IMG/VR virus record: IMGVR_UViG_3300044796_000662
Coordinates: 1 to 64,000 of that record
Strand: one strand, 5' to 3'
Length of the DNA: 64,000 nt
Made by a program: the position numbers and the translations under genes. Each line of letters starts with the position of its first letter. The stretch's first letter is position 1. Below, one piece after another: positions 23,301 through 23,860 of the stretch. A model generated the notes under the pieces. The model was not told the origin of the DNA and did no database searches. It saw only the letters and a list, made by a program, of their open reading frames with translations.

Positions 23301-23744
23301 TCAGGCTGTCTTCCCGAACAGGCGAGCAAGGAGCCCAGGCTTGCTGACCGCGACCGCCGGCGCGACCACGGGGACGGGCTCGGACTTGGGGGCCTCCTGA
23401 ACGACCGCTGCGGGCGCTGGTTCCGAAGCCAGCCACGCCTTGACGTTCGCCAGCTCCAGCTTGAAGCCGTGGGCCATCGCCACATTGCAGATGCCGGAAG
23501 CGGAGGGCATGTTGAACTCGCCGCACTTCGGCTCGCACGCGATGTACGGCTTACCGCGCAGCATCGCGTAAGCGAGGAGCAGGAGCCTCGTCTCGTCGCC
23601 GTAGTCGCGCTTCTCGACCCACGCCTGCCAGCGATCCATGCCGGCTGCGTCGCGGATTGCTCCACGCAGGACCGTGCGGCTCACGTGCTCGCGGTCACAA
23701 AGGCTCTTCTTGATCTCGGGGTACTTCACGTTTTTCTTGCTCAT
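23301..23744 (-). CDS. conserved phage hypothetical protein
   Basis: 'TRLLLLAYAMLRGKPY..CE' motif. GGAG RBS. Confidence 0.75.
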   Translation of the reverse strand: MSKKNVKYPEIKKSLCDREHVSRTVLRGAIRDAAGMDRWQAWVEKRDYGDETRLLLLAYAMLRGKPYIACEPKCGEFNMPSASGICNVAMAHGFKLELANVKAWLASEPAPAAVVQEAPKSEPVPVVAPAVAVSKPGLLARLFGKTA

Positions 23745-23860
23745 GACACTCTCCGTTTTCGTTGGGTTGCTCGACCTGGTTGGAGGGAGCATCGCCACGG
23801 AGGGCCACGAGCGCGCTGCGGGTGCAGCTACGTGAAACCGCTGATGTACAGCTAGAGCAT
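23741..23860 (-). other. leader ORF with two in-frame UAG codons and RGPP motif
   Basis: ML*LYISGFT*LHPQRARGPPWRCSLQPGRATQRKRRVS-TGA. The final TGA overlaps ATG 23744. Confidence 0.6.

Follow-up and report, generated by a model that had tools for sequence, protein, structure and literature searches.

A putative amber-gated leader peptide ahead of PTH2 and suppressor-tRNA genes in huge phages

The window analysed here, i.e. the first 64 kb of the 363-kb IMG/VR contig 3300044796_000662, carries on its minus strand a short leader open reading frame (ORF) that is interrupted by two in-frame UAG codons, contains the motif Arg-Gly-Pro-Pro (RGPP) and stands in front of an operon encoding a PTH2-type peptidyl-tRNA hydrolase and two tRNAs with the anticodon CUA. 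The same proteins recur on a 570-kb contig, which identifies the source as a huge phage. We think it likely that this element is the leader of a code-switch operon: ribosomes would reach RGPP only when a suppressor tRNA decodes UAG, and would then stall and unmask the downstream start codon. Across huge-phage lineages, the type of stop codon found in the leader varies together with the anticodon of the tRNA encoded in the operon. Arrest leaders themselves are known; what would be new here is an arrest-peptide leader with suppressor-tRNA activity as its input, in a phage setting. Literature searches on suppressor tRNAs, arrest peptides, leader peptides, PTH and phages returned no description of this arrangement, and no earlier mention of a linkage between PTH2 and suppressor tRNAs in huge phages was found in the literature.

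The leader ORF extends from 23860 to 23741 (minus strand) and reads ML*LYISGFT*LHPQRARGPPWRCSLQPGRATQRKRRVS* (asterisks are stops), that is, ATG CTC TAG CTG TAC ATC AGC GGT TTC ACG TAG CTG CAC CCG CAG CGC GCT CGT GGC CCT CCG ... GTG TCA TGA. Its ATG lies at 23860-23858, the two UAG codons at 23854-23852 (UAG-1) and 23830-23828 (UAG-2), each followed by CTG-YAC, and RGPP, spelled CGT GGC CCT CCG, at 23809-23798. The terminal TGA (23743-23741) overlaps the ATG (23744-23742) of a 147-aa ORF whose Shine–Dalgarno (SD) sequence, GGAG, occupies 23754-23751. A sigma-70-type promoter (23868-23896, minus strand) precedes the leader, with a TTGACA -35 hexamer at 23896-23891, a 17-nt spacer and a CAGAAT -10 hexamer at 23873-23868, the end of which is 7 nt from the leader ATG. 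It matches the consensus at 10 of 12 positions and is the sole sigma-70-like site on the minus strand between 21200 and 23950, where shuffled sequences yield 0.1-0.3. The initial annotation, made from the window alone, had already described this reading frame with its two ambers in a shared TAG-CTG-YAC context, an ATG 7 nt past a -10 element and a frame ending on the next ATG, and we confirmed each of these features. Note that the pattern seen in the window does not by itself exceed chance, because RGPP and RAPP each occur ten times over the six frames of this 62% GC sequence and the odds that a frame finishes on the next ATG are 1 in 3; its significance comes from the comparison with other phages.

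For that comparison, viral contigs were searched with an alignment of PTH2 proteins, which gave 80 huge-phage loci (L082-L161) with GC contents of 0.26-0.70. A suppressor tRNA is present in the same locus as PTH2 in 57 of the 80, within ~1 kb in most, and its anticodon is mostly CUA, in several cases UUA and in one UCA. Leaders were sought with the pattern M-x(0-12)-stop-x(0-14)-[second stop]-R[AG]PP, the opposite strand serving as a control: the operon strand gave 35 matches in 31 of the 80 loci, the opposite strand 2. About 35 huge-phage lineages (GC 0.28-0.66) thus display a start codon, 1-12 codons, a stop, 2-11 further codons and then RGPP or RAPP, as in MHFW*IRGPP, MIHFW*IFSRGPP, MLHFW*GNPPFT*LRRIRGPP, MYL*LNPPFG*LHPRSRGPP and MFL*LPPPHKSRAPP. 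Two additional cases are L122, with the variant RSPP, and L163, an uncultured 485-kb GenBank phage (LR745208.1); RGPP, RAPP or RSPP is found in ~36 related leaders.

Among the loci in which both the leader stop and the operon tRNA anticodon are readable, ~28 combine TAG with CUA and 7 combine TAA with UUA (L163 and L122 included), with 0 mismatches; L113, in which no tRNA is seen, and L091, in which a TAA leader accompanies a tRNA with an odd loop containing UUA, are uninformative in this respect. On a maximum-likelihood tree of PTH2, well-supported branches force at least three changes between TAG and TAA: L097 (TAA) is nested among the TAG lineages L110, L092 and L121 (support 100/99), and L163 (TAA) is sister to L103 (TAG; support 100/87). 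The leader stop and the anticodon have therefore changed together repeatedly, and this covariation constitutes, at the level of sequence, the strongest evidence that the leader stop would be decoded by the operon's own tRNA. Neither the covariation nor the two amber-suppressor tRNAs at the end of the operon had been within the view of the initial annotation. In the sole locus with a tRNA(UCA) beside PTH2 (L151:6846-6919), the patterns used revealed no RGPP-type leader; a TGA-gated leader, if present, would provide a third kind of covariation.

What is conserved at RGPP is the peptide and not the DNA, as indicated by the 28 distinct 12-mers that encode it in 35 leaders: the arginine is specified by CGT, CGC, CGG, CGA, AGA or AGG, and the glycine by all four of its codons. 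The arrest-like character first assigned to this motif is in keeping with its conservation as amino acids across lineages and with its publication as an arrest motif (PMC12992588, PMC10987492). The start of the leader is likewise recognizable throughout. In 19 of 35 lineages, the geometry is that of a leaderless transcript (TTGACA-16/17-NANNNT followed, after 6-9 nt and mostly 7, by ATG or GTG), as had been proposed for the window, and the remaining lineages, mainly of low GC, have an AAGGAG Shine–Dalgarno sequence before the start. Since every leader has either a promoter-adjacent start or an SD sequence, the mini-ORF appears built to be translated.

Translation of so short an ORF could also matter in another way. 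In the bar minigene of phage lambda, an invariable AUG AUA stop preceded by an SD sequence of its own, translation is itself the active event, and toxicity, a feature of Pth-deficient cells, requires high expression and specific last codons. The initial annotation had already raised, as an alternative, a resemblance between the Met-Leu-stop at the 5' end of the window leader and such minigenes, which cause peptidyl-tRNA drop-off and so report Pth activity. On this view the minigene itself would be the functional unit, and the PTH2 of the operon would handle the result. The two sense codons before UAG-1 and the presence of PTH2 in the operon agree with this proposal, and its hint of a connection with Pth activity was borne out in so far as a PTH2 gene is indeed there. 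As the main function of the leader, however, a bar-like minigene is highly improbable: the ORF ahead of the stop varies from 1 to 13 codons, is often leaderless and contains no conserved AUA or bar-like sequence. The conserved parts are a tRNA-matched stop and an in-frame RGPP after it, which indicates readthrough, not termination.

The close relatives of the window allow the reading frame to be followed at the nucleotide level. The 147-aa protein has seven homologues among 5.8 billion proteins; the contigs concerned (L002-L012) share the gene order, and the homologue is the first gene after the leader in each relative examined (L002-L012, L015). TTGACA is invariant in these relatives, and the conserved ATG follows 6-7 nt past the -10 element. 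From leader ATG to gene ATG, the distances are 116, 119, 119, 149 and 86 nt in the window, L002, L005, L011 and L012, respectively, all being 2 mod 3. In these five lineages the zero frame is open, apart from the stops, through to the ATGA overlap, since the indels ahead of RGPP measure 3, 3, 6, 6 and 12 nt and the post-RGPP indels of L005 (-2, -2 and +1) restore the frame. The suggestion that two ambers lie within a readable frame is thus supported by a frame that runs through the stops and is kept across indels. L002-L011 carry two tRNA(CUA) genes along with two in-frame leader TAGs, L012 pairs one TAA with one tRNA(UUA), and L015 likewise has one TAA, a tRNA(UUA) being found in L119 of the same contig.

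Searches by motif added few related sequences. When viral contigs were scanned for exact occurrences of the LYI..GFT block, the source contig alone was retrieved, and the GenBank phage collection yielded no match, as DNA or as protein, to the region or to the 147-aa protein. An RGPP-SD-ATGA pattern applied to metagenome contigs returned 66 stretches. Apart from L024, which comes from the contig of L002, and perhaps L027, none of them is related, and nearly all are coincidental matches within coding DNA of high GC. L014, L017 and L018 were rejected as unrelated. In L027 (Ga0157374_10210858, reverse-complemented; 505-680), an upstream ORF (uORF), MSARARGPPFGLVFPRKQEPHQRRLS*, has no internal stop, lies 18 nt past a tRNA-like gene called Ala(agc) by ARAGORN and has an ATGA overlap with a gene that precedes a TatD-like ORF; its tail and SD sequence resemble those of the window leader.

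In the predicted fold of the window leader RNA, the ARGPP codons (GCUCGUGGCCCUCCG, 23798-23812) pair over 15 bp with a segment (CGGAGAGUGUCAUGAGC, 23739-23755) that holds both the SD sequence and the start codon of the 147-aa gene; an RNA fold occluding the ribosome-binding site near 23750, which the initial annotation had put forward as something to look for, is therefore predicted. The minimum free energy of the leader RNA is -52.5 kcal/mol (z = -3.8), and 0 of 200 shuffled sequences fold as well. The helix taken as a duplex has an energy of -24.1 kcal/mol, versus a mean of -15.5 with non-cognate downstream regions. It is kept in four lineages (the window, L002, L005 and L011), with one-sided changes only: a C-to-U change that keeps a G-U pair, and a U-to-C change in L002 that breaks one pair and keeps the proline. 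More widely, a pairing of the RGPP codons with an SD sequence and start codon is predicted in ~24 of 33 lineages. In 19 of 35 leaders CCT encodes the first proline and so provides an anti-SD CCUCC, and in L102 a CCACCU that pairs with AGGUG looks compensatory. Cognate duplexes average -13.8 kcal/mol across lineages, versus -12.9 for non-cognate ones (permutation p = 0.009).

Two further structures are predicted in the window leader. A small hairpin, GCUGC-ACCC-GCAGC (23815-23828), begins at the G of UAG-2; its loop varies among relatives and it is absent in L011. In addition, UUCACGU (23836-23830), which comprises the Phe and Thr codons and the U of UAG-2, pairs with ACGUGAA (23731-23725) within the 147-aa gene and closes the entire leader into a single domain. 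Both strands of this pairing are invariant in close relatives, and the predicted pairing may be the reason why TTCACGTAG is conserved at the nucleotide level.

This structure raises the question of whether the element could be a conserved non-coding RNA, or operator DNA, in which the reading frame is coincidental. Its exceptional folding points in that direction, as does the nucleotide conservation of the leader among close relatives, which exceeds that of the flanking proteins. Such an explanation is nevertheless scarcely credible, given that the leader has no Rfam match, that RGPP is spelled in 28 ways over a GC range of 0.28-0.66, that the stop covaries with the anticodon, that indels keep the frame and that each leader has a start codon accompanied by a promoter or an SD sequence. 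As to operator DNA, the conserved blocks TAGCTGTACATC and TTCACGTAGCTG are each single-copy in the window, so they do not form a repeated operator, and the idea that GCTGTACATCAGC is a palindrome was dropped because its right arm is not conserved.

A mechanism that accommodates these features can be outlined from what is known of RAPP-like arrest. RGPP is the most robust RAPP-like arrest core and is refractory to EF-P; the ribosome stalls with the codon of the third residue in the P site and the second proline codon in the A site, and stalls of this family open an SD-sequestering stem, which induces the downstream gene (PMC12992588, PMC10987492). By analogy with published toeprints (PMC10987492), a ribosome stalled on the window leader would be expected to have its P site over CCU and its A site over CCG. 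Judging from the promoter geometry, the transcription start is probably the A of the leader ATG or an adjacent nucleotide, which would give a leaderless mRNA on whose 5'-terminal AUG ribosomes would start. Without suppressor tRNA, release factor 1 would terminate translation at the first UAG, after 2 codons, or at the second, after 10; the 15-bp helix would then persist, and the 147-aa gene and the genes coupled to it, PTH2 included, would remain untranslated. With charged tRNA(CUA), both UAGs would be decoded and the ribosome would arrive at Arg-Gly-Pro-Pro, where it would stall with Pro-tRNA in the A site, as on RAPP/RGPP arrest peptides. By covering the 5' strand of the helix, the stalled ribosome would free the SD sequence and AUG and allow the downstream genes to be translated. 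In this way, the leader would make the synthesis of PTH2 and its companion proteins depend on amber being read as sense. We infer that amber suppression, by pushing ribosomes past normal UAG stops, should raise the number of stalled complexes and the peptidyl-tRNA load, so that PTH2 would be wanted exactly when suppression is on.

Several observations weigh against this mechanism. No compensatory pairs (0) are found among close relatives, in which the helix is invariant and hence offers no base-pair covariation. About one quarter of the lineages have no predicted pairing between RGPP and the SD sequence, and the cross-lineage difference in duplex energy is modest because generic SD/anti-SD complementarity is common to all. 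The layout after RGPP varies (an ATGA overlap, a following gene fused in frame, or a stop codon straight after the motif), which means that the output step may not be uniform across lineages. The nascent chain at the predicted stall would be ~20 residues long in the window and 8-10 in some lineages, whereas RAPP/RGPP arrest has been assayed in the literature within longer sequences. Unmasking of the SD sequence cannot by itself control the tRNA genes, which undergo no translation. Finally, the codon right after the stop is CTG, ATT, ATA or ATG in 25 of 35 leaders, and this could reflect re-initiation at a near-cognate start.

Were such re-initiation to follow termination at the UAG, ribosomes starting on the adjacent ATG or one-off near-cognate codon would reach RGPP without any suppression. 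This is very unlikely to be how the leader works, since it leaves unexplained why the type of stop tracks the anticodon through at least three switches; moreover, TTC follows the second TAG of L011, and CAC, GGT or TGT follows the stop in other leaders. A C or an A after a stop codon is also a context expected to favour readthrough. The residues directly before the readthrough stop are skewed as well, toward F-T, F-W, F-L, F-F and F-Y (35 leaders). Possible causes of the biases before and after the stop are the context for termination or readthrough, a part played in the arrest peptide, and near-cognate re-initiation. The non-coding, bar-like and re-initiation explanations each fail to account for the covariation of stop and anticodon.

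The genes behind the leader bear on a further possibility, namely that the output is transcriptional. The operon, all on the minus strand, consists of the promoter, the leader ORF, the 147-aa gene (23301-23744), three small genes (23298-23005, encoding 97 aa; 23008-22835; 22835-22608), the PTH2 gene (22229-22621; 130 aa; PF01981, 28.6 bits for a cut-off of 23), an HNH-like ORF and the two tRNA genes. The homologues of the small ORFs are in the same order in L002, L005 and L011. At the last three junctions, including that with PTH2, stop and start codons overlap, which allows translational coupling of the downstream ORFs; at the first (23301/23298), there is a 2-nt gap. The two tRNA(CUA) genes lie 2.2 kb downstream of the leader. 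The first (type A, 21430-21503) has an acceptor stem GGGGCUU with discriminator A73 (Rfam RF00005, 54.3 bits) and is, from its CUA anticodon, an amber suppressor. The second (type B, 21351-21424) has an acceptor stem GCUCCCG with discriminator G73 (RF00005, 57.5 bits) and carries CUA in an 8-nt anticodon loop, CCUCUAGU.

Given that the operon ends with tRNA genes, whose products are not translated, and that the minus strand has no further promoter-like site between them and the leader, it is conceivable that readthrough and the RGPP stall, or the translation that they switch on, shield the RNA from Rho, instead of or alongside a translational output. The result would be a positive feedback on the tRNAs and a bistable switch. 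The leader is C-rich downstream of RGPP, and an output of this kind is used by the tna operon and by a synthetic amber-in-leader switch, as summarized in PMC6412442 (citing Liu et al. 2011). A transcriptional output would indeed be needed for any feedback on the tRNA genes, as these are not translated. We nonetheless regard this possibility as rather doubtful. No intrinsic terminator is seen within or after the leader (there is no terminator-like site in 23000-24600, and the only two, both weak, lie far downstream), strict polarity would bar the tRNAs from ever being made first, and a Rho-based version presupposes Rho in the host. Besides, the strongest conserved structure hides the SD sequence and AUG and forms no terminator. 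The two outputs, transcriptional and translational, could coexist.

We also considered whether TAG is simply a sense codon throughout the phage genome, in which case the leader would be an ordinary small gene that senses nothing. Suppressor tRNAs are a hallmark of recoded phages (10.1101/2021.08.26.457843), and TAG terminates 23 of the 73 crude ORFs of the window, which is rather many. This explanation is improbable, because third-position GC collapses past several of the window TAGs, a NADAR domain is complete after one of them and no gene of the operon contains an in-frame TAG. Moreover, a position before a suppressor operon, an RGPP motif and a helix with the SD sequence would not be expected of an ordinary gene, and the host reads TAG as a stop until the tRNA is made, so that the leader would still act as a sensor. 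Treating TAG as sense lengthened many ORFs, an approach that was abandoned since it is confounded by antisense open frames in GC-rich DNA. Three candidate pairs of TAG-joined ORFs in the window showed no split domain, and no recoded gene was found in these 64 kb.

The tRNA genes show some peculiarities of their own. The type B loop CCUCUAGU is closed by the stem CCGGC/GUCGG, and CUA stands in a normal loop of 7 nt in the L002, L005 and L011 orthologues; in the sister lineage L083 (7366-7443), the corresponding sequence is CCCCUAAC, for which ARAGORN calls a 4-base anticodon, 'ccta'. The 8-nt loop may belong to an expanded-loop decoder or reflect a mis-drawn stem. L002 and L003 (both 4447-4521) encode identical 147-aa proteins and have sharply different anticodon arms in tRNA-A, GCG-UA-AUUCUAACCUACGG versus GCGCGG-AGUCUAGAUCGCGG; the ARAGORN call for tRNA-A of L003 is Leu(tag). 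Between PTH2 and the tRNAs, the ORF 21468-22253 (minus strand) displays HNH-like motifs (CHYCN ... NCLPCCFPCN) and repeated GxxFGRL..W.C.CDCG units; relatives have no gene at this position, and the ORF is probably a homing endonuclease insertion.

Little could be learned from the other proteins of the region. Neither PHROGs nor Pfam yielded a match for the 147-aa protein, the 339-aa protein or the small proteins, and the ESM Atlas provided no usable lead for the first of these (best score 0.59, pLDDT 0.42). The 339-aa ORF (23912-24931, minus strand), on the promoter side of the leader, belongs to a very large family (>1100 matches, the best being ~55-85% identical). It lies downstream of an R2K ATP-grasp gene, shares its frame with that gene and with the leader, and in the window copy has ~31 extra C-terminal codons ending in TAG. 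The window has no counterpart of the 114-124-aa gene that relatives possess between the 339-aa ORF and the leader. Elsewhere, it contains huge-phage accessory genes, at 61130-62647 (plus strand) and at 10782-11231, 40405-41904, 52036-53769 and 56501-58756 (minus strand); they comprise a NAMPT/NAPRTase-like gene and genes for a NADAR domain protein, a LigT/2H phosphoesterase (weak Acb1 match), a transglycosylase-domain protein and a large LPD1-domain protein.

A related and simpler arrangement exists in cultured phages. In Mycobacterium phage Alice (NC_028986.1, L162), the PTH gene gp150 is followed by a tRNA annotated as 'tRNA-suppressor (cta)' (4101-4173), located 250 nt past the annotated gene end and 286 nt past the end of the PTH2 match. 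Ahead of the annotated GTG start of gp150, positions 3435-3480 read TTGACA-18-TACCGT-6-ATG TAG GTG, with no RGPP. From its sequence, the ATG-TAG looks like a leaderless AUG-UAG in frame with the GTG start of gp150. Across 202 Bixzunavirus records the identity of this stretch is at least 95%; being close relatives, they count as one observation.

Comparison with characterized regulatory leaders shows what the huge-phage element shares with them and where it departs. Like the RAPP-like (RQH) arrest peptides ApdA, ApdP and CruR and the Streptomyces RGPP uORFs (SecM being more distant; PMC10987492, PMC12992588, PMC10951233), it is a short co-oriented uORF directly before the regulated gene, with the core (R/Q/H)-(A/G)-P-P at its C-terminal end and a stall region that is, by prediction here, inside an SD-hiding stem. 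Those peptides sense export, membrane insertion or copper by means of an N-terminal signal or transmembrane segment and a pulling force. By contrast, the phage leader is gated by in-frame stops, would present 8-21 residues at the predicted stall and is linked to tRNA and PTH2 genes. The 17 residues that precede RGPP in the window (ML*LYISGFT*LHPQRA), and the 4-7 to which they are reduced in other lineages, include no signal peptide or transmembrane segment and are too few to exit the tunnel.

As in trp, his and leu attenuation, the progress of the ribosome over diagnostic codons would report a charged tRNA, and these codons match the product of the operon; here, however, the diagnostic codons are stops read by a suppressor tRNA, the competing event would be release factor action instead of ribosome pausing, and the window leader has no terminator/antiterminator pair with a U-tract. 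The gene for release factor 2, prfB, contains an in-frame UGA, a +1 frameshift site and an internal SD sequence that together provide negative feedback. The phage leaders, by contrast, have no frameshift site, no SD-like motif before the TAGs and, in five lineages, an open zero frame to the ATGA overlap, and the proposed outcome of readthrough is an arrest that opens the downstream start. In synthetic amber-in-leader switches (Liu, Qi, Yanofsky and Arkin 2011, as described in PMC6412442), a leader TAG ties expression to a suppressor tRNA, as we propose here. According to that description, they were engineered from tnaC with a Rho-dependent read-out, whereas the phage leader is natural, contains RGPP and stands ahead of suppressor tRNA genes.

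Code-change modules of phages, in which a suppressor tRNA gene is likewise present in the phage genome, cluster it with translation-related genes and are thought to be expressed before the recoded late genes (10.1101/2021.08.26.457843). Unlike the operons described here, they include aminoacyl-tRNA synthetase and release factor genes and occur in low-GC gut phages, and no leader peptide or PTH2 link was reported for them (10.1101/2021.08.26.457843). A jumbo-phage survey mentions PTH2 without a tie to suppressors.

The published model for the timing of a code change specifies that code-change genes are early and recoded genes late, and no more (10.1101/2021.08.26.457843). The leader offers a concrete candidate for the control element, and one that recurs in dozens of phage lineages. 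In its broadest form, the proposal is that huge phages of many environments and, in the simpler AUG-UAG form, Bixzunavirus carry a natural genetic-code sensor that arrests the ribosome to switch on a PTH2/suppressor-tRNA operon and that, combined with transcriptional coupling, would amount to a positive-feedback commitment to the altered code; we hold the chances of this wider proposal to be evenly balanced. If true, it would extend RAPP/RGPP arrest to viruses and to tRNA-dependent decoding as an input, would provide a natural counterpart of the synthetic amber-in-leader switches and would explain why the archaeal/eukaryotic-type PTH2 is frequent in jumbo phages, namely as the neighbour of a suppressor tRNA. 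The presence of a related arrangement in cultured phages of Mycobacterium smegmatis makes part of this idea testable at the bench.

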